Origin: Isurus oxyrinchus
Lineage: Eukaryota
Direction of reading: 5' to 3'
Length of the DNA stretch: 64,000 nucleotides
NCBI GenBank assembly: GCA_026770705.1
Contig: JANJGN010000036.1
Coordinates: forward strand, 2,418,001-2,482,000
Shown here: positions 37,219 through 62,779 of the stretch, piece by piece
How the letters are laid out: each line of letters opens with the position of its first letter
How positions within the stretch are numbered: the first letter of the stretch is position 1
Notes under the pieces: model-generated
Seen by the model: the letters and a program-made list of their open reading frames with translations, nothing else
Told to the model about the DNA's origin: nothing
Databases searched by the model: none
Position numbers and translations under genes: made by a program

Positions 37219-37319
37219 GTCCTGAAATAAGAATTCGTGACTCGACAAACCTGACGCCCGGCATCAAGTCAATGGGGGTAAATGGCTTGATTTCTGGGTT
37301 AAAGCGACACTGGGAATCG

Positions 37320-37756: not shown

Positions 37757-37799
37757 ATGGGCGTCATCACTCTCTGCGCCCTGCTCCACCTCTTCCCAG
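37757..37799 (+). CDS. VJ-C1 receptor gene A exon 1: signal peptide (MGVITLCALLHLFP-G)
   Basis: acaATGg context, 43 nt, phase-1 donor G|GTTAG; same length and LLHLFP-G ending as the gene B leader. Confidence 0.88.
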
Positions 37800-38422
37800 G
37801 TTAGATTTCCTTACTCCTGATGAGCGGGGGGACCCCAGGGGAAGCTCGCTGAGGAATGTCAGGAGGGTGAGGAGGCGACGCCGCCGCTTTCTGGAATATT
37901 CCTCCTCTGCCGAGGTAATGAATGGTCTAAAGGTCAGAACTCCAGGTAAATCGAAATGTCCCACATCTCATGGCTGCAAATGTGAAAAGGACAGGACAGC
38001 CCTGACTGCGCCCCGGACCGAGACTTATCCCTTCACCCAGCAGTCTGTCTGATTATTACCACGGTGCTATTTCTGGGATCTTGCTGTGCGCTAACTTTTC
38101 GCCGCATTTCCGAGAATGCAAGAGTGACCGCCCTTGAAAAAGTAATTCATGTGAAAAGCCTTTATCTCCTTCCTATACCTTTCTTTTTCTCTCAATCTCT
38201 TTCTTTTTTTCTTTGTTTCTTTGTTCCTTCCTCTCTTCCTCCAAGTCCGATCTCAAATTTAACCCTCAGCGCTTTATCCCGGCTACAGGTCAGGAACTGG
38301 CGATCCTTCCTGACAGAATGTCCCTGTCACCAGGTGACAGGCGGAATGTCTCATTGGTATAAAACAGGTTTTATGTTTCCCTGACATAACAGGATGTCTT
38401 GTGATGTGTTCTGTCCCCTCAG

Positions 38423-38761
38423 TGACCGTCTCTCAGGCCGCGTTCCCGCAAACTCCGGCAACTCAGACCGTCTCGGTGGGCAGTAGCTTCAAGGTGCATT
38501 GCCACACAGGCTGGTTATCAAGTGGAGCTGTTTACTGGTATAAACAGCAACACCGAGAACACCTGCAGTTCGTTCACATGGTGAGAAAGCACATCCCTGC
38601 AGAGGGAAGGTTTTCAGGAGAAATCAACGACAAATCGACCATTTACTCCCTGGTGATCGAGGAGGTCCAGAGAAATGACTCGGGTGTTTATTACTGCGCA
38701 GCCCGGAAAACCCATGGAATCTCCCTGGTCTTCGGGACCGGTTCCAAATTGTTCACCACAG
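38423..38761 (+). CDS. VJ-C1 receptor gene A exon 2: fused V-J Ig domain, no RSS
   Basis: ccctcag| ... G|GTAAA, 339 nt, phase 1-1. VTVSQAAFPQTP...FKVHC...VYWYKQ...RFSG...YSLVIEEVQRNDSGVYYCAARKTHGISLVFGTGSKLFTT; FGxG J motif is in the same exon. Confidence 0.95.
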
Positions 38762-38824
38762 GTAAAAATAAAAAGAGAAATGAGATTGTTTACTCGCTTT
38801 ATCACTGTTTTTTCCTTCGATCAC

Positions 38825-39155
38825 GGGATGTGGGTGTCTCTGGCTCGGCAAAGCATTTATTACCCATCCCTAATTACCCTTGTTCAGGAGGCATTTAAGA
38901 GAAAGTGTGGATCTGGAGTCAGATGTAGGGTCAGACCGGGTAAGGGCGGCAGATTTCCTTCCCTAAAGGGCATTAGTGAACCAGATGGGTGTTATTTTCT
39001 TAATGATGACAATCGATTCCTGGTCATCATTAGACTTTTAATTCCAGATACTTATTCCGTTCGAATTCCTCCCTCTGCCGGAGGTGCGATTCGAAGCCGG
39101 GTCCCCAGAGCATTACTCACTCTCGAGATTACCCCAGCACAGTGAAAACACCACT
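38825..39155 (-). mobile_element. Shark tRNA-type SINE (same family as 42055-42510)
   Basis: Reverse complement shares tggagtcacatgtagg.cagacc...ggcagatttccttccctaaagg.cattagtg with the 42.3-42.5 kb copy. Confidence 0.7.
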
Positions 39156-39235
39156 CCGCACCGTGTCCCCCAAACTACCAATAACCAGGAATTCATGGTG
39201 AATAATAATTATATCTTACGTTCCAAACTCTCCAG

Positions 39236-39538
39236 GTACGCCGACAATATTCCTCTTAGCTCCGCCGGTGGATGAAGCTGTTGGGATGAAGACTGTCCCA
39301 TTGATGTGTTTGGTGACCAACGCGGCCTCTGTTACCCTTCCCGTCCGCTGGAATGTTTCCACGTGGGAGACCGAGGGATGGACGGATTCTGGAACAATCG
39401 ACTCCAAAGGGGCGTACAATATAAGAAGCCTCATCAGGGTCCCGCCAGGGACGTGCAGCGGGAGCGGGTTCTGCACTTGCTCTGTTCAAATCACCTCCAC
39501 TCAAAGTCTCATCAGTGAAAGGTTCTCATATCAGAGAG
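39236..39538 (+). CDS. VJ-C1 receptor gene A exon 3: C1-type Ig domain
   Basis: ctccag| ... G|GTAAT, 303 nt, phase 1-1. GTPTIFLLAPPVDE...VPLMCLV...VRWNVS...DSKGAYNIRSLIRV...FCTCSV; the PTIFLLAPP, LxCLV and GxY...S.L pattern is typical of Ig/TCR C1 domains. Confidence 0.92.
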
Positions 39539-39659
39539 GTAATTATTGAAAATATCCCTGTACTGGTATATTTAATTGCTGATGTGAGATTTAATTGTTC
39601 GCTAATACCGCATTTATTTTAATAGTCGTTCCCTTTCCCTGTGTATGGACACAGGCACA

Positions 39660-40275
39660 GAATCGTAGAAAGTTTACGGCACAGGAAGAGGCCATGGTGT
39701 CTGCCCAATAGAAAAAAAGAGCCACCTATCCCAATCCCACTTTCCAGCATTTGGCCCGTAGCCTTGCAGATCACAGCGCTACAGATGCACATCCAACTGT
39801 CTTTCCAATGAATTGATGGTTTCTGCCTCTACTGCCCTTTCAGGCAGTGAGTCTCAGACCCCTGCAACCCTCTGTGTGAGAAAAATCTTCACTCGTCTCC
39901 CCTCTAATCTTTCTACAAATCACTATAAACCTGGACACTGACCTCTCTGCTAAAGTAGAAAAGCCATTTTCTCCCCCTCCATCCAGACTCCAAACAATTT
40001 TGTACACTTCAACCCAAACTCCCGTCAGCCTCCTCTGCTCCAAGGAGAACAGTCCCAGACAATCCAATGTTTCCTCATAGCTACAGTTTTCCAGTCGTGG
40101 TAACATCCTTGTGAGTTTGTTCTGTACCCTCTCTAATGCAATCACGCCCTTTCTGTAATGAGGTAACCAGAACTGCACACACCACTCACGCTGCAACCTA
40201 ACGCATGTTTTATACAGTTTCAGCATAGCCTCCCTGCTCTTGTATCCTAAAGCTCGTCTAATAAATGAAAGGACC
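39660..40275 (-). mobile_element. CR1 3' fragment
   Basis: MLKLYKTCVRLQREWCVQFWLPHYRK...ALERVQ...LGLFSLEQRRL. Confidence 0.88.
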
Positions 40276-41422
40276 TGGGGCTAATTACCTGGTCAATTAC
40301 CTCTGCCACATTTCTCAATGTTTCAGTGTTTAGCTCACTGAAAGTTGAAGTTCATCTGTTTAACTCTGCCAGAGTTATATGGTGGGAGATAAGGAATCAG
40401 TCTGAAATTTTGCAGTTTAAATTGGAAAATTGAAATTAAATTTCCAGTTTGAAACTTGAGCAGTATTTTGCTTCTATCCTCCCAAACGCACAATACCATC
40501 AACATGTGCTCTTACTCTCATATCCCTTTTTCTGCCGTGTGTTTAAGGAGTTTCTATGCAATGAGACCTTCCGTTCTAGCCATTTCCACATTCTAACGAT
40601 AAAAGCAAAATACGGCGGATGCTGGAAATCTGAAGCAAAAGCAGGAAAAAAAGACTTGGAGAAGGGTCACGCAGACTCGAAACGTTACCTCCGTTTCTCT
40701 CTCCACAGATGTTGTCAAGCCCGCTGAGATTTTCCAGTTTTTTTCTATTTTTGTTCCACATTCTAACCACCCTGAACAAAACAAAAAAAAACACGGTTTC
40801 GCTTGAAAGCCCAATTGGGATTCATAATTGGTAGAAGAGTTGAAAGCTCGACATTCCAGGAGACAAAGCGGACTTTGCATTAAATTCAGATTGATACAAA
40901 AGTATCGGGATAGGTCCAAATAGTGGAGCCGATGTTTGATTCCTTTGGCGAAGAAGAATGTTCTACAATGGACACTAAACCACAAGACAACAACACTAGC
41001 AGAGACAAAGTAAGCCACTTGATTGGCACCTTATAAATACTCACCCTCTGCATGGGCCCAGTGGCAGTAAGATCTACCATCTACAAGGTGTCCTGCAGAA
41101 TCTCGCCATGGTCACGTTGTTCTCTAATCTTATTGTGTTTTCTTGAATTTACCTCTTAATCCTTGTCTCTTCCAGGCTCGCTCTGTCTCTCCACCAATCT
41201 GTCTACCCCTTTTCATTTTCATATTTTTATTTCACTCGTGTTTTTGATTATACTGGTAAAACTAACTTTGAGTCCCCATCCCTCGCTCTTTTGAGTGGGC
41301 GTTGGTGTGTAATCTTGAAATTTTGAAAAGTGACAGGTGGCACGGGTAAGGGATTTTTCAATATTGTTTCTCCGCCCGTCCCCTCCCCCACCCCTCACCC
41401 CCTCACCCGCCCCCTTCTTCAG

Positions 41423-41536
41423 AGCCGCGAAAATGTACTTGCTACCTGTTGATTTACCGAAGTTCATTGGGGATCATTCTCTTTCTATTGACCTTGACTG
41501 TCGTCGCTAGATGGAGCTACGCAAAGCGACACTCAG
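41423..41536 (+). CDS. VJ-C1 receptor gene A exon 4: Cys-containing stalk and transmembrane segment with Arg
   Basis: cttcttcag| ... G|GTAGG, 114 nt, phase 1-1; EPRKCTCYLLIYRSSLGIILFLLTLTVVARWSYAKRHS. Confidence 0.85.
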
Positions 41537-41672
41537 GTAGGAAGGGCTGCAAAGTTTTGGGGCTCTACACCCCTGCAAGTGAGTCGATGCACACTTTGCC
41601 TCTTTTTGACACGTTAATTAACCCGATAAGGGTAAAATTTGCAGACATTTATGTCCTTTTTTTATATATCAG

Positions 41673-41731
41673 GCAACGGGAGCTCGGATAAAACTTTCGC
41701 GGATTCTGGGCCACGTGAACGAAACCAAGAG
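41673..41731 (+). CDS. VJ-C1 receptor gene A exon 5: cytoplasmic exon 1 (GNGSSDKTFADSGPRERNQE)
   Basis: tttttttatatatcag| ... GAG|GTAAAT, 59 nt, phase 1-0; a homologous 59-nt exon is in gene B (49135-49193). Confidence 0.8.
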
Positions 41732-42054
41732 GTAAATACATGGAGACTTTTTTGCAGTTTCCTGTCGCTGATTTTATACAACAACGTTGATATGGGATAG
41801 CTATGGTCCCGAAAGTTCACTAAACTTCTCATAGTCAAAATAGCATCATTTACAATTTTGCTAGAACTGGAAACTGCTGGAAATATATATCTGGAGATTT
41901 AATATCAGTAATGATATTTAATGATTTTTCAATCGAACGATAATAGAGTTAAAATGGTTGAATTATGAGAACAGGTAGCACATATTCGTTGTTTATACTG
42001 AAGAATAAATCATGTTCCAATTGTAATGCTTACGCTGCTTAAATTATCTATGAG

Positions 42055-42510
42055 GGATGTGGTGGCAGAGTGGGATTGTCACTGGGCTACTGTTCAACTG
42101 TAATTTCCTGGATACCCGGTTCCAGTTCCAGCGCAGCAAATGGCTCAATTTTAATTCAGTCCAAATTTGGAATTAAAAAAATCTCTAAACCATAGGTGAT
42201 TGTCTGAAGAAGGTTCATATGGACTCGAAATGTTAATTGTTTTTTTCTCCCCACAGATGGTGTTGTACCTGCTGAGTTTTTCCAGCATTTTCTGTTTTTG
42301 TTTCAAATTTCCAGCATCTGCAGTATTTTACTTTCATTATATTGTCTGGTGCACTAATGCCCCATAGGGGAGAAGATCTGCCACCCTCACCTGGACTGGC
42401 TGGCACGTGACTCCAGACCCACAGCAATGTGGTTGACTCTTAACTGCAATTAGGGATGGGCACTCAGTGCTGGCCTAGGCAGCGACGCCAACATTATATG
42501 AACGAATGAG
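42055..42510 (+). mobile_element. Shark tRNA-type SINE interrupted by a Penelope-like terminal fragment (~42200-42340)
   Basis: Head gtggtggcagagtgggattgtcactgg...gttccagttcc; insert ctgaagaaggttcatatggactcgaaa...cctgctgagtttttccagcattttctgtttt. Confidence 0.65.
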
Positions 42511-42822
42511 GAAATGATTGGATAAGACGAGAAAATCTGTTACAGGCGCGAATGCTCAGGGACAAAACCTTAAAATTGGGAGCAGCCGTTCAGAGGTGAC
42601 ATCAGAAAGCACCAGCACACACGAGGGGGAGGTGGGGATCTCAGCTAGATTTTAATATTTACTTTCAATCCTAAAGCATTGCAACGTATTTGAAGATAGA
42701 GACCAACATTGGTCTAATTGAATGGGGTATCAAGTTCCAGGGGAGCTCCTAATGTTTATATGATGATAATAGTTACAATTTCCCCTCATAGACTCTTGAT
42801 GCTCGACTGGTGTTTACTGCAG

Positions 42823-42924
42823 ATCCGGCGTCCTGACGGGGAAGAACAGTTATTGGATGAAGCAGGAGATGACGCGTTGAAGAACATTTCCACCACGGAA
42901 TTCAATAAGAAATATTGTCCAATG
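42823..42924 (+). CDS. VJ-C1 receptor gene A candidate exon 6: cytoplasmic cassette exon ending in YCPM
   Basis: tttactgcag| ... ATG|GTAATT, 102 nt, phase 0-0; IRRPDGEEQLLDEAGDDALKNISTTEFNKKYCPM. No homolog seen in genes B or C. Confidence 0.55.
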
Positions 42925-43222
42925 GTAATTCCAACAATATTTCCTCGATCTTGTGCCGTGCTCGTGTGTTTTGGCGCTCATTGGCATAGGTGTGGAAATG
43001 TAACTTAGAAGACCTCTAGGTGTCAGCACTTCCACTGGACGGTGTTTCACTTTTATGTTAGTGAGTAACAAGCACTTGTCACCAACGAATGACCCCTCAG
43101 ATGTATTTCCAATATAGAAACGATTTAGCACCTACTGTGGATTTGTCATTATTATTGTTCTCCTTCTTGTTCTTGCTCTTATTATCATCCGTCACGTAAA
43201 TGTCCATCGGTGATATCACAAC

Positions 43223-43800
43223 ATGAACACGGACGTATACAGAGATATAACTGCATACCTAAACCTTGTATAACACTGCAAAATGTGGTTTCCTCAAACG
43301 AACAGAAGCGGCAGGGATCTTATTCTGATTCTGGATCAGTGTCTGTCGAAGGAATTGCTCCCTAATACTTAACTGACCCTTCTATTATTAGATGTCAGTG
43401 CGGTTTACAGTTAGATCGATAATGAGGACCGGATTCAAATTAAGATGATGATTACAGGCTCCTAATGCCCTCTGTTTACAGAGAGACATATCCCTTGCAA
43501 TCTGAAGCTAAATGCAAAGAAAAATATCAAACAAGCAGCGCTGGTTTTAAATCTAAGAATGAGACATCACCTTCCTGAAACATATAAGATTCTGAGGGAG
43601 CTTTGACAGGGTAGATGTTGAGAGGCTGTTTGCCGTCGTGGGGAATATGGAACTAGTGTTCACAGCTTCAGAATGAGGGTTTCCCATTTACAACTGATAC
43701 GATGTGATTGATTTTTAAATTGTCCTGCCCAGAGAGCATTTGAAGCTGGGTCAGTGAACATGCTGAAGTCTGAGTTAGACAGATTTTTGATTGACAAGGT
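43223..43800 (+). repeat. ~580-bp dispersed direct repeat, copy 2
   Basis: Collinear with 36635-37218; this copy continues into a complete CR1 3' end to about 43925. Confidence 0.9.
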
Positions 43801-45479
43801 AGCCAGAAATTATGGGGAGCAGACAGGAAAGTGAAGCCAAGGCCACAAACGGTTCAGCCATGTTCTTATTGAATGAGGGCACAGGCTCGGGAGCACAAAT
43901 GTTCTACTCCTGCTCATATTTCTCAGGATAGTTTAATATTTGGTCAATTGAAATAAATGTTCAGACCGTAATTGTTGACTGGTCTAAAATCAATCTTAAA
44001 AGGAAAATATTTTAACAATTTACACCAAAGGACTCTGTGTTAAGGTGAACTGGTTTTGACACCGTTTTAAATACAGTGAGACTTAGTTAGGAGATTTACA
44101 AAATGGTTCCATTGCGCCATTGCTTCGTGGGAGCTTTTCACTCCGCTTCCTGAAACAAGGAGCTGCAATGGGTATTTAAAATTGACGTGAATTAAACAAA
44201 CGCTCATTAAAATGGCCTTGTTAAACATTAATATCGACCCCAGCAGCCAGATTAATGAATCCGAATCCCAATTAAGATGAAGATGAGAAACCGGTTTATC
44301 GCGATGCTCATCGCAAAGGGTCAAATTGCTGCATCCCAATCGACACAAAACATTTAGAATCTTCTGCTGGCTGAAATCATTCTTTTGTGGGACTCTCTCA
44401 TGGAAAACTTGAGCCAATTATAAAGTTAAAACAGCAAATCCGTGCTGCAAATTCTCCACAGGATCCCAAGTCAAGGAATCTTCAGGAGAATTCTGAGCGA
44501 CGGAAGCTGGGTGAGAAGAGAGAGATACATTCATCTTAATGTGACTAACGTGATAGAATGAAATACAGTCAGAATGGGTTCTGAAATGAGCAGACACTGT
44601 TGTCCCTCACTGAGTGCCTGAACTGTTTTGCAGAAATGCTTGACCTTGAAAAACAAAGAAGTGAGTCAGTGACCCTTGCAGCAGAGAGCGGGGCTGGGCA
44701 GCAGAGAGGCTGTGACAGCGAGCTTCAGAAAGACTCCTCGATCACAGCCCATTCAGAGAGTGTGAAAAGCACATCGAGGGCGGAAATCGTTGACCCAGAT
44801 TCTGATCACTTTACATTTGAGATATAAAGTTGTTCGAGGCAGAAGCTCTTAGTGGGTTTCCTGTTATTTTACCGTATCTTATGCAAGCTTCACGTACCGA
44901 GCTGCCTTCAGAGGTGAAACGCTGGGTATCAATGTTAAACTGCTGAGAGAAGGCGGCTTGCTCCAAAGATAGATTCAACTGAACAGAGAAGAGGCTGGTT
45001 TACAATGAACCTCATTTACAGCACCCTTATCGATGTAGCGTCTGTCACTGTTTATCTTCAATCCCGGTTTAGAATAAAATTTGCAGGTTCCCAATATTAT
45101 TCACAAATGATGCCTTTACTTCACCTGCTGCTCACAACGAATAATCTGTCTGTTACCCACGCACAGGCAACACTGCAACAGCTCACTCAGGCTTTTAATG
45201 TAGTTTTGAATACACCCCACACACAAGTCATTGAATATGTTTCAGTCTCGGTATTGAGGTGGTAGTATCGGGAATTTTGCACACCACGGTGCCATTCAGG
45301 TGAGGTTATTGGAACTTATATTACTTTACTTTTTAGTGACAAAGATGGAATCAGTTGGCACAGAAAGTACGTTTGTGTGTGTGTGTGTGTTGCGTGTGTG
45401 TTTGTGTCTTTTTATGTGTTTGTGTGTCTTTTTATGTGTGCATGTGTGTGTGTGTGAATATGATTGTGCGTACCTTAGT

Positions 45480-45950
45480 GGGTCACTGTCTACCACTGTC
45501 TCCACCCAGCTCCCTCACTCAACTATACGCCCCTCAGAGTCATAAGTGGAGGGTTCGAGTCATCACGTCAGAGAATTGAGCAAGAAGTATAGACTGGCTC
45601 ATCACTGAGGGAGTGCTGCACTGACTAAGGTGCCGCTTTCAGATTCAGTGTTAAACCTTGGCCCATTCTGCCCGTTGATTGGAGTGAAAGATGCACCATC
45701 GCTATTCCGTGAAGAGGTGGGGTGGGGATTGGGTTGTCTCCTGTGACCTGGGCGATATTTAATCTCTCGACCAACATCTACAAACACATTTTCTAGATCA
45801 TAATCTTATTGTTTTATTCCTGGGATCTTTTTGAGTGCAATATAGCGGCCCCATTAATAACATTAAAAACAGTGAGTGCACTACAAGAAGTGTCTGAAAA
45901 ACAAATGGAGTTCCTGAAACCTTGAAAAGCGCTATATTAACTCAAGCCTT
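45480..45950 (+). mobile_element. Deu-domain SINE (SacSINE1/AmnSINE1-like)
   Basis: ctgagggagtgctgcactg...ggtgccgctttcaga...gttaaacc...ggccc...aaagat...gaagag...tcctgtgacctgggcgatatttaatctctcgaccaacatc resembles the Deu domain. Further degenerate copies at ~55370-55800 (-), ~38020-38160 (+), ~51760-51880 (-), ~58990-59110 (-). Confidence 0.75.
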
Positions 45951-46483
45951 TTAATTGTGTGTGTGTGTGTTATTTGATCTGGATACAATTAATTCTGTGG
46001 GATCTCCCCAACCGTATAGATAGGATAGAGCGAAAGATGGTAATCTGATTGGCGACTTAACATCAATGCAATCCAATAAACTTGAGATTCATCATCCCAA
46101 TTTTCTGATTACACCTTGGTGATTTCTGTATTAAGTTGCTTTCTGAATTCTGCTTCTCTATTCCAATACGATAATTCAGGCAACTCTTGCAGCGGCACAT
46201 TTAACAAATCAATTATAAAACTGAGATAGGGAGCAATGAAAGCAGAGATAAAAAATACATTTTAAAAGACATGCATATTTGTGGCAGAAAAAAATGCAAA
46301 GTTATGGGAAAGGAGATGAGTTCACTGGGACGAATTGGGTTACTTTTTCAAAGAGCTGGTATAGACACCATGGGCCGAATGGCTTCCTTCTGTGCTGAAT
46401 CATTCTATGATTCGAAAAAGTTCTATTACAACGTTAACCTGACTTCACCTCTAACTATTTTTGAATGTGAATACATATCCGAG

Positions 46484-46543
46484 ACTCAGGGCGGACCTCT
46501 CTATGCCTTCCTTGAGTTTGCTGCATTGCAAAATAAATCATAA
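46484..46543 (+). CDS. VJ-C1 family terminal cytoplasmic exon (TQGGPLYAFLEFAALQNKS*), probably of gene A
   Basis: Homologous to 58143-58223 and 55045-55110 (ggacctctcta(c/t)gcc...gctgcattg). Phase 0, weak GAG acceptor; the stop comes 7 codons earlier than in the gene C copy. Confidence 0.65.
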   Translation, partial: TQGGPLYAFLEFAALQNKS

Positions 46544-49134
46544 AGAAGACGGGTCGCAGATAAGAATCTGGGCATTTTCTTTCTGACGAAATTTGGAGGA
46601 GGCATGATTTGCCCAATAACCCACAGCCTCGTGGATACAAAACGGAGCCATGGAGACCCCCATGAATCAACTAAACTGCTCGTGCCAGAAGTTACAAAAA
46701 ACAGTCTCCTTTTGTAAAATGTGAAATAAGTTGTTTTCAGGATTTTGCGGGTATTCCACTGCCTTCGTGTAATTCAAATATGAAAAAAAAACACTGAACA
46801 AATCTTAGGGACATTCTTCAGTTCCTCTGGACCTTTTCTGCTGATCCTGAAATTCCAGTCACAGACAGGATTTTTAATTCTTTGCAAACGTCTGTATGTA
46901 AAGTATGTATGTAATAAATTATTCTTCCATTATAACGATTCATCAGAGATGTGCATCGATTAACAATTAGCTTATAATTAAATGCCAATGGATGAAACTG
47001 CAAATCATGTTGAGCTGACAAAATCAGCACTGGATTGAAATGGTTTGGTGGTGGTGTTCCCTGCCTGAATTTCATTTACATAATTAGAACACAGCAGGAA
47101 AAGGACACGGGCCCTCATGCTGGAACCTTGTGATGACCCCATTTTAATTTTACAGAGTGTGTTCTGCTTTGAGCTTAGTTTTAAATACATATGTCAGAGT
47201 CTTTGGTTCAGTGCAGTGTGTTTTGGAAAAAGAGGTGACTTTGCAGATATGTTTCCCCAAGCCGATCACCACTGGGCCATTCACTGCTCATGCCTGCAAT
47301 GTTGTAGACAAATTAATAGGGATTTACTACCATAGCAACCCAATGATCATCGTACCACTGAACCGCCAGCCTGGCAGGGTGCAATCTGGATTGATGGTTT
47401 TTTTCTGTTTGTCTGTTTTTATTTCCCTATTTTCCTGATCTCTGGTTTGCAAAATTTTGCAACAATGTTTTCAATCAGAGAGATAGAGGATTGCACAGAA
47501 CCCGGGCACACGTCATTGACGATCAAGGTCATATCAGTCTATATCTTGTTATTCTGTTTATTCAGGAACCAAAAGGTAAAGGCGGACGAGATAAATAAGC
47601 AACATAAACAGCTCCTGCTAAAGTCACTTTCAAGATCCATCTCGCAGAAACTGTGCAATAAACCTGTTGATTATTTAATTGAGCTCCTGACTGTGGTGAC
47701 CTGGTTAATGTGAATTTAGCTTGTATTGTAGTGTTATTACAGCAGATATAATTTTACCAGGACTCGGGTTAAGAAGGTTAAACAAGAAGAATAGGTTGCT
47801 TAGACTAGGCTTGCACTCCCTCCGTGATGATGTTTCTGGTCCACACGAGCCACCTCCCACCCTCTCTGCATCCCACCCCATGAACAAATCATTACATCTA
47901 TTTTTTTCTCTCATATAATTATTCAAATTCCCCTGAAAAGCACGGCTGATAGTCACCTCAACTTCTCCCCCGGCATCGATTTCCGCATTATACCCACTCT
48001 CTGTGTAAAGAAGATTATCTTGAATTCCCCACTGGATTTATTAGCGAATATCTTAAACTGATTGCCTGTCGTTCGTGTTACCCCTTCAAGTATCCAATAA
48101 TTTCATAATTTTGAAGGCCTCTATCAGGTCAGCCCAGCAGTCTACTCTTTTCTAGACAAAAGAGTGCCAGCCTGTTCAGTCCTACCTGAAATCATAAACT
48201 CTTATTTCTGTTATCATTCCAGGAAAATTGTTCCCAAATGCAAAGCGCGCACATCTGCTCTATAAAGATATCCTGAATTGCACATTCAATCAGCACATTT
48301 GGACTGAGCGACCAAACAACTTCAAATGACAAACGCAATGCTTGGATTTCAAAACCTGCTTTAATGGATTGGTAAATTGGACACTGATGCGCTCTTTCCT
48401 GCTCAAGCTGAAAGAAAGATCCGCAATTATTTTTTTAAAAAAGCACTAAGACAAGAAAGTAACACGTGTAGAAACTGAGCAGAAAGTTAAAATGTCCGAA
48501 TGTCAACATTCTCCTGAAATGGAGCAGGTTCTATTAGGCATGCAGTCTCTCCAGTAGGCGATAAATTGCCATATTATTACTGATAAATCTGCGTTCAGAA
48601 TTTGGGATGACACATCCAGGCTTTCCACCAATGAGGACGAAAAAAGAGGAATCTTTCCACTGCACGACATATCCCGGAAACAGCATATGAGCTGTCAATT
48701 TCCATTGCAATCAGAGTATAGGGTCCGCATTAAACGCCAGCCGAGCATAGAGTCTGCAACAGTAAGCACAAACCGTGATCGTGAGAAACAGCATCATCCA
48801 GGGGGCGGAAAGAGGACATACAACCCTTCGAGCCTTTCCCGCTAGACAGTTACATCATTTTGGATCCGCATCTCAACCCTGTTTACCCTCCTTGCTACCA
48901 TAACACTTAATCCAACAAAAAACTATCTCCAACGAAAAACTATCACGCTGAGTTTCAGCATTTTCAGCTGACCCCCCATTTAATTTTGTTTCCATGTATT
49001 GACACAGTGCTATTGAAAAGTCTGTTATCTTAAAACATACACACATATGACAGTAACCAGATATCTTCAAACTTGAACTTAAAATCCGCCACCCCTATGT
49101 ACACACGCGAACAACAATTTCTATTCATAATTAC

Positions 49135-52100
49135 CGCCTTTTCTTCCGTACGTGCTCTGGAATATGTCAGTTCCTTACCAATGTTCATGTTGCCTGTTAG
49201 AAAGAGGATTTTAAAATGAGTGTAACTGTCCACATTTCACACTGAACCGTGTGAAAGTGTACACACCCTGCGACAATTAGACAGAGTAAGAGCGCTCCTA
49301 AGTTACAACATCTCCCTACAATCTCTACCTGTCTGCTGTTCTTGCAGATCCTGCTCCCGGCGAGCAGGACTAACGCCAGAAGGAGTGGCGCCGCCAATAA
49401 ACTCCCAGAATGCGAGAAATTGCAGGGGGCAGGTAGCGATGAATCTGGAGAGCAAATAAAAAGCAGTGTATTTGAGAATAAAAACACGTAACTGAAGCCT
49501 TTTGACTCTGACAGAACGTTCAAGTAGACTCTAGCACCCGGGAGCTAGAGATGGCCAAATAATGTCAGTCTTGTCAATATCATTAACATCTCCAGGTCAT
49601 TAATAAAAAAATAAACTGAAGCAGATTAGAAAAGTGAAGCGAATTTACAAAGCTAAAATCAGATAGATGGATATGGAGAGAGAGATAGAGAAATTGGGAG
49701 ATAAATAGAGTTGGAGGGAGTATTATTAGAGATAGATGGATGGATCGATTGAAGGAGAGTTGGAGAAATAGAAAGATAGATGGGCAGTTAGACAGAGAGG
49801 CAGGTACGTGGATAGACAGATACACATATAGATACACATATAAATACACACAGACACACACAAATACATGCATGCATACATATATTTAAGCACAAGAATA
49901 TGATAGAACTACACAAGAATGACCAGAGTGGTGTGGGGTACAGTATGAAGCAAGGGAGCCTCCAAGTTTCTGCTGACTCTTCAAATTCCACCTTGTAATT
50001 CAACACTTCCAAACCCCGTCAGTCTGAGAAATACTCATCCACCCCCTGCATGCATCTAACTTTCTATCCATCTTCCCACATCTCCCACCAACTGCGCGTT
50101 TTATTATTTCCCAACAATCATCTTGTGAGGCACATGAAGGCCTTGTGGAACTCCATTCACGTAATAGCCAACGAATTCTCTTGAATATCTATTCAGACAT
50201 TTCTTCGGAATAAAAGCTCTATTCAACTCTTTAAACATAACCACAATTCCACAAACCGGTGCGTGCTGACTTTAACTACCCCATCTACTGAGAATGTATA
50301 TACCCACAGAATGGGGAGAATGTGGAGCTCCGTTACCAAAGCAGTGGTTAAGGTGAATAGCAGAGATGCATTTAGGACAAAGCTGGATAAACATATGAGG
50401 GCGAAAGGAATAGAAGGATATGTTGATTGTGTGATTTGAAGTGGGAATGGAGAGTGCTTGTGCGGATCATGAACAGCAGCACGGAGCAGAGGAGCCAGAA
50501 GGGTTTGTCTCTGTCCTGGAAGCTCTGCAGAATATGGATAATAACAGAGAGGAATCGGCGGAGGAAGTAGGAAATGGTAATTTGGGGTGTTATTTGATCA
50601 TTGACATTCTAAAATGTCCTTTTCCCGCCACACGCACCAATCCCAATGAGGCAGATAGATGAATATTTCATAAACGTTTACACTGGAGAAATGAGATGTA
50701 TGAGAGAAGGGACATGGCCACATCGGAAGGAGGAATATTTAATGTACAAACAGATATTGCCAAAAAATAAGCAGCATATAAACTAAAGCAGGAAGCTATT
50801 AATAGCTAACTCTCTCAGCTGAGGCACTTTCACTGAGAAGAGTTTCACTGGATTTGATTTCAACGGTGCAAGTAAAGCAAGCGCCGCTGCTCCAAGTTCC
50901 CACACTCAAAATTATGTGGCTCCTGACGGCACAAGTTCCATCCGTCTCGAGGGTCACAGAATCGCTCTATACCTCGGTATCACGCCTGGAAACATTCCAG
51001 CAGACAGCAAATTAATTGGTATCCACACCCTTCACCAAACACACCAAAGGGACCCTTTCCATTGAGGCAATTTCAGCTGGCGGTGGAGTTAAGAGGTAGA
51101 TTATTCGAGGTCCTGGTGGGAAGGAGAGATAGGATTCAGTCGCTATTGGGTATAAACTGCTGATTAGTTATGGTGCAAAGTGTAAATTAATAATAATTTT
51201 TACCTGTAATGATCAACTTGGAGCCGTTTCCAAACATCAAGGGCATTCCGCTGAGCTCCTTGGCTGAACAGTGATACACACCAGAATCATTGTATGTTCG
51301 TAATGACCAGAGAATAGAGAATGGATTTCTGGTCAACCTCTCCTGAAAATCTCCCGATAGATGTATTTTGTCACGGTGTAAGCAAGTTGTAGATTCTCCC
51401 GTTGCTGATATTGTTACCCCTGGATCGTTCCCCCTGCCAAACAGCCTGTGTGACAAACCACCTTGTAGGTACTTCCAAGCGAGAGACTCTGGGCCATGGA
51501 GTCTGGGAAAAAAAACTGCCTGAGACACAATAAATGAGAGGGAAAAAATCAACAAACGAGGTTCTGCTTTAGCAGCGAAAGAGAATATGTTTCCTCTGCA
51601 GAATTGGCTACAGCAGTAAACTATGAAACAGACCAGCCCTTCATTCTTCATAAATCCGGTGGACTCAAGGGCTGAAAGTTGTACTTGAAATCACTGCAGG
51701 GACCAGGGTGAATGAGAAACGGGTTTGAAGCCGATGAAGGTTTTTTTCAAGTTCAGCTGCAGTTGTAAAACAGGGAATTCGGCGAATTTGCGCACAGCAA
51801 GATTCCACAAAGCGCAATGTGATATTCACCCAGATTGTATTTTATGACGTTGTTTGTAGGGATAAACTTAGGCCCCGGGGAGGCCGAGGAAACAATCATC
51901 CACCAGATCATCCACTGCCCCCTAACACCTGCCACCCCCCCAGGACCCCGCATTCCTCCTTTCCCATGCCGCGTCCCCCCTCCCTCCCAACCCCCTCGCG
52001 TCGCCCTGGCTCTTTTTCTCCCTGGGGAAATGGGGCGGGTTTCACGCCAAAGAGGTGGACAGGTGATCTCGATTCACCAGGTCATCCGATAAATTGGAGA

Positions 52101-52298
52101 ATGTTGACATGTGATCCAGTATGATCAGGTGGGATAATGTATTTCTTCAACATGAAGTTAATATGATAGGATGTAGCTGTGGGAGTAATTCTGCACCTGA
52201 CGGACTAGCTCAGTGGCCAATGAGACAATTCTGAATGAGGAGAGAAGACACAAACCTGGAAACAGATGCAGCAACATGCAGGACATTAAGAATCTCAT
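49135..52298 (-). pseudogene. VJ-C1 receptor gene B (pseudogene): leader 52298-52256, VJ 51533-51204, C1 51112-50810, TM 49444-49329, cyt1 49193-49135
   Basis: Leader MRFLMSCMLLHLFP-G (43 nt). VJ ends NDSGVYHCSAKELSGMPLMFGNGSKLIIT but has a lost acceptor (CAT), a TAA and several frameshifts. C1 (303 nt, GPRIIYLLTPP..VPLVCLV..WNVS..GTWSSGACFTC) has TAA and TAG and a damaged donor. TM exon is 116 nt (1-nt deletion versus gene C). Cyt1 GNMNIGKELTYSRARTEEKA. Confidence 0.92.
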
Positions 52299-54067: not shown

Positions 54068-54358
54068 NNNNNNNNNNNNNNNNNNNNNNNNNNNNNNNNN
54101 NNNNNNNNNNNNNNNNNNNNNNNNNNNNNNNNNNNNNNNNNNNNNNNNNNNNNNNNNNNNNNNNNNNNNNNNNNNNNNNNNNNNNNNNNNNNNNNNNNNN
54201 NNNNNNNNNNNNNNNNNNNNNNNNNNNNNNNNNNNNNNNNNNNNNNNNNNNNNNNNNNNNNNNNNNNNNNNNNNNNNNNNNNNNNNNNNNNNNNNNNNNN
54301 NNNNNNNNNNNNNNNNNNNNNNNNNNNNNNNNNNNNNNNNNNNNNNNNNNNNNNNNNN
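54068..54358. other. Assembly gap (N run)
   Basis: 291 Ns; a second gap of 164 Ns lies at 10084-10247. Confidence 1.
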
Positions 54359-55020: not shown

Positions 55021-55044
55021 GATCAGGCAGGCGAGGAGGGTAGG

Positions 55045-55110
55045 ATTCTTTTTTGATCTATTTTCCAATGCAGCCATGTCCAAACAGGCGTAGAGAGGTC
55101 CGACTTGAGA
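55045..55110 (-). CDS. Duplicated VJ-C1 family terminal exon (SQVGPLYACLDMAALENRSKK...), possible alternative last exon of gene C or a relic
   Basis: About 145 bp (55045-55190) nearly identical to 58158-58303, including the acceptor aaatgtgtttcccag|; the frame stays open to 54895 in unrelated sequence. Confidence 0.5.
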
Positions 55111-58100: not shown

Positions 58101-58142
58101 GTCTCTCCTCCACCATTCATCGGAGAGAAAACACCCGGATTC

Positions 58143-58223
58143 TCATCTGCGACCCGGCTTCTTTTTTGATCTCTTTTCCAATGCAGCCATGTCCAAAGAG
58201 GCGTAGAGAGGTCCGCCCTTAGA
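58143..58223 (-). CDS. VJ-C1 receptor gene C terminal exon (SKGGPLYASLDMAALEKRSKKKPGRR*)
   Basis: aaatgtgtttaccag| acceptor, phase 0, 81 nt to TGA; the 3' UTR is also similar to 46544-46660. Confidence 0.75.
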   Translation of the reverse strand, partial: SKGGPLYASLDMAALEKRSKKKPGRR

Positions 58224-60074
58224 CTGGTAAACACATTTAACATTGATGTTCAAAAATACTTTGAGAAGACGCGTCAGATTATCTCGGCACGCAATCGCAT
58301 TTCATAAAATCATAGAATGATACTTCACAGGAGGAGGCCATTCGGCCCATTCTGTCCCTTCTGGGCTTTTTGAAAACGCCATCCAATTAGTCCTACTGTC
58401 CCCTTCTCTGACCCCTTACCCCAACTATTTCCTGCCCTTCAAGTCTTCATTCTTGAAGTTACTTTTGATTCTGCTTTCATTGCAGTCTGTATCGATTTGA
58501 TATTTTTGTCAAGAATTACCTGAATAAAAGTTTTGTAACAGGTAAGCAAAATTCGGAAAGCAATTAACACAAAATTCACCAAAGTTTATTCAGAAAACTG
58601 GAATGGTGACGCTATTGATTTGAATGGATTACTCTGCTGTTCACTGGCCAGTTCGGTTATCGTGTTTCGCCATGCGTCTTGTATAAATAGAATCGTGAAC
58701 AATATCAAAATAATTTCGTTTATATCGTTCCTCTCACGTCTTCAGGAGGGCACAGAGCACTCAAAGGCACTTCTCAGAAACGTAGTTGCTGTTCGTCGTT
58801 TATGATCTGCGGCAGCCATCTTGGGCACAGCATGATCCTTTAAAAAGGATTTTGATAATGGCCCAGATGACTCATTTTTTGAGATTTTGGTTGAGGGGTT
58901 AAATATCAAACAGGACACAGGCGAGAACCACGCCCTGCTCCTTCTCCAACAGCGCTGGCGACATCTTTCAGCCAACCTAAGGGCGCAGCCGGAATTCCGT
59001 TTAAAGTTTCACCTGAAAACAGCATCTCTAAATTGCAATACTCCCTCAGCCCTGCACTTCAATGTCAGTCTCGACTAATTGCTCAAGTCTCTGGAGTGAG
59101 GCCTCCTGGACTAAGAGGTGTGTATGGGGATTTGGGATGGTGGGTGGGAGAGAGAATACATGAATACCCATTGCGTCAAGGCTCACAGTCACGCTCAGTC
59201 TCACAATCAAACGCACACACAGAGTAGCACACTCATATTCTCCAGAACTTATTACTTCTCTGTCAACTTACTACCCTGGGTTTGGCCTTATCTTCACTCT
59301 AATTCCAGTGGCTAAGATATTTTGAACAAACACTATGGGGTGGACGATGGAGGAAGGAGGACCGTGCAGGAGGGGATCTAGAATCACCATGGGAATAAGC
59401 AAGGTTTATATAAAATCTCAGACAGCAGGACATCCGGAAGATAAACTGCAGGGTATCGGTAATACAGACATAACAGACATTCTACCAGGAACATGAGCAT
59501 ATCCTTCACATTATCAGATGGAGAGAGGGCGGGTGGAATTGTAATGATTGCAGTTAGAGGGAAAGGAATTGTGACACAATTTCAGCTGCTCGAGACTGTG
59601 ACCTGCCCTCTGTTATCCATGTTAATATCCGGCATGGGGCGCCATGGACTTCTCCCAAAACTCATGTTTTCCTGCATATTATTACAACAGTTTCAATGCT
59701 CTCACCTGTATTCCACCCTGATGTGTCCGGTTCGCCGCTGTTTGACGGTATTCACCTGTGTGTTAATGGTTAGGATATGATTTGAAATGTCACCGAAATC
59801 AACAAAGTCTATAGTTACTTACAAAGAATTGCATGCCAATGACCACGAATGCACCAATGGCTCCAATACATCAATGGGCCACAAACGACAATGGGCCCCC
59901 AAACTGCGAAAACTCATCAATATGCCATTTGTTCCTAAAACTTCAATGGAGCCCAATTCGACAATGGTGGATAAGCACTCCTAACACCAGTGTCTGTCGT
60001 CTATTGTCTATTTGGTATATTACTGCCAATGTTAAGAAGCAGTAAATCGCCCTTTTATGAGACCAACAGATATT

Positions 60075-61835
60075 TCAATAACAAAGAGGGGGAGGTTCTG
60101 GACCTAATATTGGAACTGAGTCAGGGCAGGTGGAAGGCGTATCAATAGAGGGACATTTTGGCGATAGTGAACATAACTCAGTTAGATTTAGAATAGTTAT
60201 GGAAAAGGATAAATTTGGGCCGGGAGTTCTAAACTTGGGAAAGGCATATTTTACTAAGATGAAATACGATTTGGCCCAAGTGCATTGGGAGCAGTTACTT
60301 GCAGATAAAACTGTGTCAGAGCAGCGGGAGACCTTTAAGGAGGAAATAGCGATAAAACAGGGCAACTATGTTCTAGTGAAGGCAAGGGGTTGGGGGTGCA
60401 AGGGGCAAGTGCTGAAAACCCTGGATGTCAAGGGGCATAAAGGTTAGGATTAAGGCAAAAAAAGACGCTTATGGCAAATACCGAGGACTTGATACGGCAG
60501 TGTCCATAGAGGAGTGTTTAAAGGTGCAGGGGGGAACTTTAAAATGAAATTAGGAAAGCTAAGAGAGTGCATGAGAAAGCATTTGTGCGTAGAATAAAGG
60601 AAAACTCAATGGGGTTTGTTTTTTAAATATATAAAGAGCAAGAGAATTACTAGGGGAAGAATAGGGCCAATTATGGACCACAGAGGTAATCTATGTGTGG
60701 GACCGGAAGACGTGGGTGAAGTCCTCAGTGAATACTTTGCTTCGGTCTTCACAATGGGAAAGGACAACACAGGTATAGACATCAAGGTGGAGGACTGTGA
60801 AATATCTGAGGAAATTAACATATACTGACAGGCGGTACTAATGGCCATAAAACAGGATTAATCCGTTGGCCCCAATGAGACGCATCCTAGGCTGCTGAGG
60901 GAGACAAGGGAAGAGGTATCAAAGACCCTGGCAGTAATTTTCAAATCCGCCCTGGGCACAGGCGAGGTTCTCACTTTGTCCCATTATTAATAAAGGGAGA
61001 ATAAAATTAGACAAGGGAATTACAGGCCAGTCAGTCTAACCTCAGTGATGATGAAACAACGAGAAATAATTCTGATGGGTGGAATATACTTGCACTTGTA
61101 GAAACACTGATTAATAAGGGATAGTCAGCATGGTTTTGTTCAGGAGCTTGGTGTACATATCCACAGATAACCGAAGGCAGCCGGGCAGATAGATAAGGTG
61201 GTTAAGAAGATATATGACATGCCTTTAATAGCTGAGTTGTAGAATACAAGAGCAGGGAGGGTTTGGTGGAACTGTTTAAAGCGCTGGTTCGACCACAACT
61301 GGAGTGCTGGGTGCAGTTCTGGCCCCCACATTATATGAAGGATGTGATTGCACGGGAGACGGCGCAGAGGAGATTTACCAGGGTGCTGCCCGGACTTGAG
61401 AGTCTGAGCTTGAGGGAAGATTGGATAGGCTGTGGTAGGTTTCCTTGAATCAGCGAAGATTGAGAAGGGAACATGTCGAGGTCTATAAGGTTATGAGAGA
61501 CATAGGTATGGTGGATAAGAAGGCACTTTTTCCATTAGTAGAAGAGCAATAACCAAGGGGCAAAGATTTACGTTAAGAGGTAGAAGACTAAGGGGGCCAT
61601 TGAGGAGAAATGGTTTCATCCTGACAGTGGTTGGAGTATACAACGCACTGCCTGAAAGTGTGGTTGAGTCAGCAATTCTAGTCACATTCAGATATTCATT
61701 TGCGTTACCATAGCCTCCAGGGCTATAAGCCAAATGCTTGAAAATGGGATTAGTGTAGTCGGGTCTTTGTTGGTTGGCGCGGACACGATGGGCTGAAAGT
61801 CGTGCGTCTGTGCTGCAAACGTCTATGAGTCTATG
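60075..61835 (+). mobile_element. CR1 LINE ORF2 to 3' end with an internal deletion at ~61140
   Basis: HFGDSEHNSVRF, FFKYIKSKRITRGRIGPI...EYFASVFT, then a jump from QHGFV to the post-RT region LFKALVRPQLECWVQFW; CR1 tail tctatgagtctatga. Confidence 0.9.
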
Positions 61836-62263
61836 AATTTATGAAAATGATCGTAGAAAATTCTGATTGTGGGAAAAGCACTCTGCAGACTGTAAGAACA
61901 TATACACATAATGCAACTGTTTCAAATCAACAAAATAGGTGACAGTTATACTCTGGTTATTTCCCCAGGGCAATATCGTGACCAATCACTTAACCTGGTT
62001 TGAATTTTAACAATGCTTGGCAGTGAACTGTCAATGCACAGCTAACCTGTGCATTTCCATGCAGACACCTCTGCCAGTCACGAACCACATGCCAAACATT
62101 CTGTACTTTCTTCTCATGGAATGTAAATTGTCTCCCTTACATTTGGTGTTCTTGAAATTTCTCCTAATGACTGAAAGTCCAAAAGCTTCGACATCATGCT
62201 CTTTATTTCGGCAATTTACCCATTTTGTCATTTAATCTCTTCCAACATGTCAGTGCAACTTAC

Positions 62264-62316
62264 CTGATTGTCGTTGATTCGGCCTTTCGGTTTGCCTTTT
62301 CTCTCTCAAGCTAAAA
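62264..62316 (-). CDS. VJ-C1 receptor gene C cytoplasmic exon 1 candidate, with in-frame TGA
   Basis: gtatccag| ... CAG|GTAAGT, 53 nt, phase 1-0 like cyt1 of A and B; reads VLA*ERKGKPKGRINDNQ. Confidence 0.55.
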
Positions 62317-62677
62317 CTGGATACGGACAGAAATATCAAACACGTGTTAGGTCTTGTAAGTCCTGGCTCAGGCACCGGAAATAGTTAAGAGAATTGCCCA
62401 ACGATTTAGAATCTAACTTAAACAGTCATAGAACATTTCTGAATACGCTATTTGAATCGGTGTTGGGGTTGAACTAGGTTTGACACACTGTAAAATAGAA
62501 AAAGATTGTTGCTGATGAATTTTGCAAATGGTTCAGTTACTCACTTTTCATTGGCGGATTTCCTGCCTCGCTCTTCTGGAAGAAAAATGTGTAATTAGTT
62601 ATTGAAAACTCCGAGAAGCGAATCACATTGGAGAAAAAATAAGTATTGACATGTCCCTTATAACCATTAATCCTCAC

Positions 62678-62779
62678 CTGATCTGCTGTTTTTACGAATC
62701 CAAATGGAAATAAGCACTGAGAGTAGAACCAGTACCAGCAGGATAGTTATTGCAACAGGAAGAGTCAGTTTGCACCAAC
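62678..62779 (-). CDS. VJ-C1 receptor gene C transmembrane exon (upstream exons outside the window)
   Basis: ttttgtctctgtag| ... G|GTGAGG, 102 nt, phase 1-1; GWCKLTLPVAITILLVLVLLSVLISIWIRKNSRS. The end aaaaacagcagatcag matches the gene B TM end aagaacagcaga-cag. Confidence 0.82.

Follow-up and report, generated by a model that had tools for sequence, protein, structure and literature searches.

We analysed a 64,000-nt stretch of the Isurus oxyrinchus genome (assembly GCA_026770705.1, contig JANJGN010000036.1, positions 2,418,001 to 2,482,000 of the forward strand), hereafter the window, with positions counted from its first letter. The window contains an intact gene A (37757-42836, + strand), a dead gene B (52298-48711, - strand) and the 3' half of a gene C (62779-58143, - strand), one gene from each of three lineages, A-type, B-type and C-type, of a receptor family whose plan combines a variable (V) region joined to its J segment, a C1 domain and a transmembrane (TM) helix. 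When the V and C1 domains of gene A were used as tblastn queries against the whole window, only one further V and C1 pair was found, on the minus strand at 51.5-50.8 kb, which is gene B. As part of the explanation developed below, the window is probably one stretch of a very large elasmobranch gene complex coding for non-rearranging V-C1-TM receptors.

Gene A reads as an intact A-type gene of six exons. Exon 1 (37757-37799, +) is a 43-nt split leader (MGVITLCALLHLFP) that ends in phase 1 and is 93% identical to the leader of the Cetorhinus protein P0063. V and J run on continuously in exon 2 (38423-38761, +; 339 nt), a single germline-fused VJ exon with the J motif FGTGSKL, whose end reads ...YYCAARKTHGISLVFGTGSKLFTTG (also ...DSGVYYCAARKTHGISLVFGTGSKLFTTG) and which matches the Pfam V-set at E 9e-16. 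Exon 3 (39236-39538, +; 303 nt) encodes a C1-set domain (Pfam E 2e-4) that scores 21.9 bits against PF07654, where the curated cut-off is 21. From its strand-B cysteine to its strand-C tryptophan lie 13 residues (C-LVTNAASVTLPVR-W), a spacing that is a hallmark of the C1-set (PMC2785349), and the (F/Y)(F/Y/H)P and xVxH motifs are kept in part only. Exon 4 (41423-41536, +) carries a stalk cysteine and the TM helix (EPRKCTCYLLIYRSSLGIILFLLTLTVVARWSYAKRHS), assigned by homology and by the helix predicted in the model of its relative. The cytoplasmic exon 5 (41673-41731, +; 59 nt, phase 1 to 0; GNGSSDKTFADSGPRERNQE) and the last exon 6 (42792-42836, +; TLDARLVFTADPAS, then the stop) were both placed by homology to the Cetorhinus maximus protein P0062. 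The exons were searched one by one and concatenated in a script solely to check frame and length; all six have AG/GT sites, and joined they give 903 nt and 300 amino acids (aa) with no internal stop, the length of the relatives in Scyliorhinus torazame, S. canicula and Mustelus.

The first five of these exons had already been recognized in the first-pass annotation of this DNA (43-nt leader, fused VJ, 303-nt C1, cysteine stalk with TM, and a first cytoplasmic exon of phase 1 to 0), and their AG/GT sites and the Pfam V-set and C1-set matches bear them out. The 3' end had to be redrawn. P0062, the nearest protein to gene A, is colinear with it and identical at 94% of positions in V, 92% in C1 and 78% in the TM exon, which places the source of the window near the basking shark. 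After its TM exon, P0062 reads GNGNSDKTFTDSGPRERNHE and then TLYARLAFTADPTS. The window contains both pieces, correctly ordered and in phase; the exon at 42792-42836 has a good polypyrimidine acceptor before it and its stop at the same position as in P0062. The earlier model instead gave gene A seven exons, 1020 nt and 339 aa, which requires an extra 108-nt exon and a PLYAFL exon at 46490. We rejected it as lacking homology support in favour of the six-exon model that the relatives sustain: among the open phase 0-0 AG..GT exons enumerated in 42837-46489, two are of 108 nt and neither is similar to any family member. The only Y[ASGT]x[LIVM] motif on the plus strand of 41538-47000 belongs to an orphan C-type exon (at 46502), and no second tyrosine-bearing A-type last exon was found there. 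In sequencing archives, four runs carry gene A DNA (X1-X4, compared over 37500-43400). They gave short genomic contigs, about 90-99% alike (about 95%), of a close relative; introns and exons are covered alike and joints occur at repeats only, so these contigs are uninformative on splicing.

Gene A is flanked by a 600-bp direct repeat whose copies are 82% identical (36635-37228 and 43223-43810, +), one lying 0.5-1.1 kb upstream of its start and the other 0.4 kb downstream of its stop. The repeat probably delimits a duplicated unit of 6.6 kb from which the second copy of the gene has disappeared.

Gene B is a thoroughly dead gene. All six exons can be followed on the minus strand: a 43-nt leader (MRFLMSCMLLHLFP; 52256-52298); a 316-nt VJ exon (51204-51519) with frameshifts and stops, readable in three different frames; a C1 exon (50811-51112) with two in-frame stops and its donor changed from GT to TT, which falls in the B-type clade of our tree; a 116-nt exon (49329-49444) with the stalk cysteine and an uncharged TM (PAPCNFSHSGSLLAAPLLLALVLLAGSRICKNSRQ), out of phase with exon 5; the cytoplasmic exon 5 (NMNIGKELTYSRARTEEKA; 49135-49193); and a last exon (48711-48753; LYARLAFNADPIL, then the stop) that is out of phase because it is 2 nt shorter than that of gene A. 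V and J are continuous here as well, and the J motif FGNGSKLIITG is still legible. By tblastn, genes A and B are only about 40% identical. The pseudogene status of B with its 43-nt leader was correctly called in the first pass, as was the partial state of gene C, with a TM exon starting at 62779.

A Cetorhinus C-type gene model, P0106, reads into B-type TM and last exons in the wrong frame; the corresponding parts of the window are 49446-49339 and 48748-48698 (-), and P0106 is 81-82% identical to the out-of-frame translations of these gene B exons. P0106 is a chimeric gene prediction, and it shows that Cetorhinus and the window have in common the order of a C-type and then a B-type gene, both pointing the same way.

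Gene C is represented by five minus-strand exons with consistent phases, and its V and C1 exons would fall beyond the right end of the window. They are a stalk and TM exon without charge (GWCKLTLPVAITILLVLVLLSVLISIWIRKNSRS; 62678-62779; 69% identical to Carcharodon P0105, E 4e-11), three cytoplasmic exons (EERGRKSANE, 62545-62575, phase 1 to 2; NFSLREKRQTERPNQRQS, 62264-62316, phase 2 to 1; GEYRQTAANRTHQGGIQ, 59706-59755, phase 1 to 0) and a phase-0 last exon (SKGGPLYASLDMAALEKRSKKKPGRR, then the stop; 58143-58223; 85% identical to S. canicula P0099). This last exon is one of three PLYAxL exons in the window (46490, +; 55110, -; 58223, -), and these exons, like the TM exon of gene C, match C-lineage proteins only (P0039, P0099, P0096, P0105 and others), whose V domain has a degenerate J and is followed by a C1 and by a longer tail with the end sequence ...GGPLYASLE/DxAALEKRSKKKAGRR. 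The claim that PLYAxL is a last exon shared by all three genes could therefore not be upheld: it is a C-lineage exon, whereas by homology gene A ends in TLDARLVFTADPAS and gene B in LYARLAFNADPIL. Nor are the three genes paralogs of one plan in the sense first proposed, since A and B, at about 40% identity, fall in different ancient clades and C belongs to a third lineage.

The other two PLYAxL exons read as duplication debris. The one previously taken as the end of gene A (46490-46543, +; GGPLYAFLEFAALQNKS, then the stop) is an orphan C-lineage last exon within 46030-47000, which is an inverted duplicate, 68% identical, of the 3' end of gene C (58670-57700). The second orphan (55045-55110, -; SQVGPLYACLDMAALENRSKKN...) is isolated and has lost the normal stop, and no other C-type exon lies upstream of it. 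An assembly gap (a run of N, 54068-54358) separates it from the leader of gene B (52298). According to the exon maps, no exon of genes A, B or C abuts or spans this gap, so the continuity of its flanks is irrelevant to all the gene models.

To place these genes, we ran an exhaustive HMMER search with the C1 exon of gene A against 1.84 billion representatives (E <= 1e-3). It returned 54 matches, the best of which are elasmobranch proteins with the automatic names 'uncharacterized' or 'Ig kappa/lambda light chain-like' (Ig, immunoglobulin), from Scyliorhinus, Cetorhinus, Mustelus, Chiloscyllium, Pristiophorus, Heterodontus, Leucoraja, Pristis, Mobula and Hypanus; queries with complete family proteins extended this list to Rhincodon, Stegostoma, Hemiscyllium, Carcharodon, Heptranchias and others. 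Members of the family itself scored from 118 down to about 60 bits and Ig constant domains of the PDB about 38 bits, and no shark T-cell receptor (TCR) or Ig light chain (IgL) was among the named top matches. Many copies of the family occur per genome, and it was present in all shark and ray genomes sampled.

A maximum-likelihood tree of 123 C1 domains, a quick search over 105 columns that includes no shark TCR or IgL sequences and leaves many forks unresolved, separated the three lineages. Gene A (winA) joins Cetorhinus P0062 and P0063 (Shimodaira-Hasegawa-like approximate likelihood-ratio test, SH-aLRT, 99) within an A-type clade of sharks (96), which is joined to a clade of batoids. Gene B (winB) groups with B-type sequences of S. 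torazame, Mustelus, Cetorhinus and Carcharodon (SH-aLRT 92), and the C-type domains stand apart as a group of 42, to which a lungfish protein attaches. In this tree the A-, B- and C-type lineages each contain both sharks and batoids, so the split between them predates the divergence of sharks and rays. All three types lie on shared scaffolds in at least eight species, of Cetorhinus, S. canicula, Heterodontus, Stegostoma, Rhincodon, Hemiscyllium, Hypanus and Mobula among them. Conservation differs between the domains, with V at 78% and C1 at 64% in the A-type orthogroup of gene A, and 50% and 61%, respectively, in B-type sharks; the TM and tail are the least conserved part across the whole family.

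More distant relatives occur in turtle (P0086-P0088), coelacanth (P0021) and lungfish (P0018). Turtle P0086 reads ...NFGTGTRLIVT, followed by C1, TM and TEYAAV, and coelacanth P0021 reads ...YFGNGTQLLLT, followed by C1, a cysteine, TM and VNYALL. In lungfish, the model P0018 combines two V domains with a C1 and lacks a TM at its end; it is the protein that groups with the C lineage. These sequences suggest that the A/B and C lineages are both older than the split between cartilaginous and bony vertebrates. In the alignment, nearly all A/B-type members carry the J motif FGNGS, in which N-G-S is an N-glycosylation sequon at the G-strand bulge (residues 110-114 of P0062), and FGTG takes its place in gene A, P0063 and P0013. 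A glycan at this site could alter V-V pairing.

The predicted fold agrees with the domain assignments. An AlphaFold2 model of P0062, built from a 32-sequence alignment (mean predicted local distance difference test score, pLDDT, 75.6), consists of V and C1 domains followed by a helix at residues 225-257. Foldseek matched it best to TCR beta chains, among them full-length ones from cryo-electron microscopy of the TCR-CD3 complex, and to Ig light chains (E about 1e-15); VIA, which is independent of Foldseek, ranked TCR V domains and entire TCR chains highest (Z 15-17), and the family profile found Ig heavy and light chains first among PDB sequences. Because TCR and Ig chains top both the structural and the profile matches, 'antigen-receptor-chain-like' is a fair label for the family. 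The same model, and a C1 domain whose best matches are elasmobranch proteins and not TCR or IgL isotypes, favour the first-pass view of germline-joined receptors shaped like TCR or IgL chains, with tyrosine tails of their own, in a birth-and-death cluster.

Two features outside the Ig folds are invariant in 32 A/B-type shark and ray proteins, a single premembrane stalk cysteine and a Y-A-x-L motif in the tail. The motif usually has T or S at position -2 (TLYAxL, SVYAxL or TVYAxL) and so resembles the immunoreceptor tyrosine-based inhibitory motif (ITIM, taken as (I/V/L/S)xYxx(L/V/I)) and the immunoreceptor tyrosine-based switch motif (ITSM, TxYxx(V/I)). C-type tails read GPLYASL in most sharks, a non-canonical ITIM with Pro at -2, and ILYASL or VLYASL, which are canonical, in rays and Heptranchias. 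An inhibitory role would be the most economical inference from the ITIM/ITSM-like tail of the A/B types. We also predicted a complex of the ectodomains of Cetorhinus P0062 (residues 6-228) and the B-type P0132 (16-237), which scored 0.29 against a mark of 0.34 and gave no verdict either way.

A survey of the TM and tail in all collected family proteins revealed paired forms in the C lineage. Hemiscyllium P0094, Chiloscyllium P0095, Heterodontus P0015 and S. canicula P0116 have a conserved NVxR motif in the membrane and a short tail that lacks any YxxL, whereas in P0092, P0039, P0096 and P0099 an uncharged TM goes with a GPLYASL tail. The ectodomains of the two forms are 85-94% identical in same-species pairs and 77% identical in one cross-species pair (P0095 and Stegostoma P0039), and the identity between TM and tail of the paired forms is 31-68%. 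A run of 16-17 hydrophobic residues comes after the arginine of the NVxR forms, which matches the spacing in gene A. Judged by this textbook signature, the C lineage of these four other shark species holds what would be true activating/inhibitory pairs. Within the window, gene A has no partner with a near-identical ectodomain, and genes A, B and C, as members of three different lineages, are not each other's partners. The paired-receptor idea of the first pass thus survives for twins of the C lineage in other species, is suggestive for gene A and fails as a pairing among the three genes on which it was built.

The arginine noted in the TM of gene A, and its absence from those of B and C, were seen again here. 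It stands where P0062 has a glycine, in the outer third of the membrane helix, and is followed by 16 hydrophobic residues (LLIY-R-SSLGIILFLLTLTVVA). In the tail, gene A has an aspartate (GAT) at the position of the tyrosine (TAT) that is invariant in the 32 relatives. Arginine codons lie at 41459-41461 and 41510-41512 in exon 4, and the aspartate codon at 42798-42800. Differences between gene A and P0062 are about three times as frequent in the TM and tail (14 of 72 residues) as in the ectodomain (15 of 210; Fisher p 0.006). Compared with the definition of an activating form, gene A has the arginine and has lost the tyrosine motif, but the arginine lies near the outer boundary and the tail is not truncated. 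The combination of a TM arginine and a lost tail tyrosine suggests a fit to an activating variant, in one gene and by single-base changes. An activating gene A had been proposed in the first pass from a model that joined the arginine to a tyrosine tail; it is the corrected last exon that leaves the arginine without the invariant tyrosine.

The explanation we favour, and consider probable as a whole, is that the family comprises three ancient lineages (A-, B- and C-type) that are inhibitory by default and have activating counterparts, with gene A possibly switching from one to the other. Each member would be a type I membrane protein with the outline of one TCR or Ig light chain, built from a split leader, a germline-joined VJ (with a degenerate J in the C-type), one C1-set domain, a membrane-proximal cysteine, a TM helix and a short tail. 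The default member would inhibit through the single invariant tyrosine of its tail, in the context (S/T)xYAxL in the A and B lineages and GPLYAxL or ILYASL in the C lineage, and the surface form would probably be a disulfide-linked dimer through the invariant stalk cysteine. Activating counterparts in the C lineage would keep a near-identical ectodomain, carry NVxR with a truncated, tyrosine-free tail and signal via an adaptor with an acidic TM, of the FcR-gamma/DAP12 kind. Gene A would be an A-type member heading toward an activating form, with its arginine ahead of 16 hydrophobic residues and an aspartate in place of the invariant tyrosine.

Several observations weigh against this explanation, most of them against its account of gene A. 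Set against the 19 residues of highest hydrophobicity in the relative's TM, the arginine falls three residues outside, from where it could snorkel to the surface; the tyrosine-bearing P0007 and P0013 also have an arginine near the TM boundary; and TM charge was seen in none of about 60 other A/B-type proteins surveyed, so that gene A, if activating, would be a lone and lineage-specific case. Since the TM and tail evolve fast family-wide, its three single-base changes could be drift or early decay. Exon 5 ends in phase 0, so an in-frame splice to the orphan PLYAFL exon at 46490 is possible and would restore a tail tyrosine, and the search of sequencing runs found no RNA-recorded run that carries gene A DNA. 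As for the family in general, the inhibitory role is read from a consensus motif, and dimerization would follow from the stalk cysteine.

In a rival reading, gene A is an ordinary member of an inhibitory family that is drifting or starting to decay, its arginine being interfacial and inconsequential and the Tyr-to-Asp change killing the tail. It would account for the single-base nature of each change and for the excess of differences in the TM and tail over the ectodomain (14/72 and 15/210), in the part of the protein that is least conserved family-wide. Active gene death is seen next to gene A, in gene B and the two orphan exons, and no other A/B-type protein has the activating pattern. Yet the exons, splice sites and reading frame of gene A are all intact, its ectodomain is 92-94% identical to that of its Cetorhinus relative, and the loss of the invariant tyrosine together with the gain of an arginine at the spacing of C-type activating forms is the expected look of an activating switch. 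We think decay unlikely, though by no means far-fetched. We are slightly more doubtful that A-type and B-type proteins pair up, one of each, in a heterodimer that is germline-encoded, resembles the TCR and is held by a disulfide, which would make the activating/inhibitory reading secondary. Both are ancient lineages found in sharks and rays on the same scaffolds, the membrane-proximal cysteine is invariant in both, and their conservation is asymmetric, with V above C1 in the A-type and C1 above V in B-type sharks; the products of chicken PRARPA and PRARPB reportedly form homo- or heterodimers. In the window, however, an intact A lies tail to tail with a dead B, so its partner would have to come from elsewhere, and the same signalling tail is present on both types, unlike in TCR chains.

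The reading of the first pass, that A, B and C follow one seven-exon plan ending in PLYAxL and that A is the activating partner of B and C, is now very improbable. Three PLYAxL exons do exist, the TM arginine is present in A and absent from B and C, and gene A exon 5 ends in a phase that joins 46490 in frame. Against this, the PLYAxL exons and the gene C TM exon match C-lineage proteins only; genes A and B have homologous last exons of their own (42792 and 48753); the region at 46.0-47.0 kb is an inverted duplicate of the gene C 3' end; no 108-nt candidate for the extra exon has any homolog; A and B at about 40% identity cannot share a ligand-binding surface as paired receptors do; and an arginine and a tyrosine tail in one chain are not the paired-receptor pattern. 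Hardly credible, in our view, is that these genes are conventional shark Ig light-chain or TCR clusters with V and J germline-joined by RAG. A V segment flanked by a recombination signal sequence (RSS) lies in the same window (1208-1751, -), and germline-joined shark IgL clusters are documented (PMC2193156). The present genes, by contrast, include exons for a TM and for a cytoplasmic part in which a tyrosine motif is conserved, their fused VJ is common to shark, ray, turtle and coelacanth relatives, and the best C1 matches are their own family, at up to 118 bits compared with about 38 for PDB Ig constants and with no named shark TCR or IgL on top. A broader extension of the explanation we favour is that the A/B/C complex and its turtle, coelacanth and lungfish relatives are what survives of a non-rearranging sister group to TCR and Ig chains. 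This would be a germline-encoded, dimeric recognition system, 36 kb from a rearranging Ig-type V segment in the window, that signals by itself through ITIM-like tails or, via the NVxR membrane motif, through adaptors, with gene A caught while switching from inhibitory to activating. We regard this as a speculative and quite unlikely extension; if true, it would show the shape and signalling of antigen-receptor chains before the RAG transposon split the V exon.

Among known systems, PRARP comes closest in architecture. It is said to be a non-rearranging VJ with a canonical J, a C domain in non-avian species, a TM and an ITIM-like tail, in two linked gene types, A and B, whose products are disulfide-linked homo- or heterodimers; it is reportedly confined to bony vertebrates, with one gene pair and a second domain called C2. 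By this definition, the VJ-C-TM-ITIM-like plan and the two linked types match the elasmobranch A/B genes, whereas elasmobranchs have three lineages, dozens of genes over > 2 Mb, a Pfam C1-set domain and NVxR variants. Turtle P0086 and coelacanth P0021, whose records bear only automatic names, also fit the plan, and we presume, as a lead and not a result, that they may be PRARPs. The elasmobranch family is probably an expanded cartilaginous-fish branch of PRARP-like receptors and not a wholly new kind, again a lead taken from the architecture. PRARP (Fu et al. 2019, J Immunol 202:1992) is cited as a non-rearranging VJ gene family in PMC10751288, and in PMC12227049 and PMC10751288 the only non-rearranging VJ genes named are UrIg, UrIg2, NKp30 and PRARP. 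UrIg and UrIg2, which are elasmobranch genes too, likewise combine a split leader with a VJ in one exon and with C1-type domains, and UrIg has a V better conserved than its C domains, as in A-type genes (PMC12227049). They differ in that UrIg2 has 9-11 C domains and each gene is reported once per genome, compared with one C1 and many copies here; neither the passages of PMC12227049 consulted nor a word search of it gave a tyrosine motif or paired forms for UrIg or UrIg2, whereas the A/B/C family has a tyrosine tail. The multi-domain Carcharodon P0011 ('titin-like', possibly UrIg2) scored far below family members. A literature search, with the original PRARP and 2023 UrIg papers outside its coverage, returned no description of the elasmobranch A/B/C family, which appears to have been unstudied so far. 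The novelty assumed in the first pass is reduced by the PRARP plan and by the turtle and coelacanth relatives.

SIRP has inhibitory (ITIM) and activating (TM lysine, DAP12) members with similar ectodomains and four tail tyrosines. It resembles the present family in being a non-rearranging V-set plus C1-set system and is its nearest named family by protein-language-model features (0.94-0.95). Membership was nevertheless rejected, as gene A has one C1 and SIRP two, the V-set being followed by two C1-set domains (PMC2785349), and SIRP was not among the top structural or sequence matches. With TCR and IgL chains the family shares the split leader, a V with an FGxG J motif, one C1 and, for the TCR, the membrane-proximal cysteine and TM helix. 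It differs in the single-exon VJ of genes A and B, without V/J segments or RSS, and in a C1 only about 20-25% identical to theirs; in contrast to the TCR, its TM lacks the conserved basic residues used for CD3 and its tail has a tyrosine motif of its own. KIR, LILR/PIR and NITR are similar as clustered birth-and-death genes with tyrosine-tailed inhibitory members, and the C lineage adds the TM-Arg, short-tailed twins; however, KIR and LILR/PIR have C2/I-set domains and NITR has V plus I, and none has the VJ and C1 architecture of an antigen-receptor chain.

The remainder of the window holds other features. The conventional rearranging V segment at 1208-1751 (-) has a leader exon and a V exon of Ig light-chain type ending ...YYCQVWDSSAG, followed by an RSS with the heptamer CACAGTG, a 12-bp spacer and the nonamer ACAAAAACT. 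It lies 36 kb from gene A, and its J and C would fall beyond the left end of the window; with this RSS-flanked V in the same window, the non-rearranging cluster is linked to a rearranging locus. A second assembly gap (10084-10247) is outside the receptor cluster. A 5.54-kb unit is duplicated in tandem (13195-18731 and 18730-24274, 98.2% identical), and its long open reading frames (ORFs) have no Pfam match and a low-complexity or satellite-like appearance. At 31217-31681 (-) lies the C-terminal half of a rhodopsin-family G-protein-coupled receptor (7tm_1, E 5.5e-9, profile positions 156-260); the N-terminal half is absent from the same open frame, which leaves a split gene or a pseudogene. Fragments resembling long interspersed nuclear element (LINE) retroelements were recognized by eye in or beside the receptor introns, as ORFs at 39840-40226 (-), 60130-60447 (+) and 63476-63703 (-); the two that were scanned, 39840-40226 and 60130-60447, gave no Pfam match.

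Genes in which an unsplit VJ exon stands beside a C1 domain are sought as relics of the antigen-receptor ancestor, and the elasmobranch family stands out from UrIg, UrIg2, NKp30 and PRARP by its many genes in all shark and ray genomes sampled, its three old lineages, a predicted fold closest to TCR beta and Ig light chains, a tyrosine tail of its own and, in at least one lineage, activating and inhibitory twins. For the annotation of these genomes, the labels that its members were given automatically ('Ig kappa light chain-like', 'Ig heavy chain Mem5-like' and 'TCR beta chain-like') are wrong, and some of the gene models are chimeric. The family offers experimentalists a defined gene set for expression studies and a search for ligands. 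If the explanation given here is true, antigen-receptor architecture would be tied in these receptors to the signalling of innate paired receptors.

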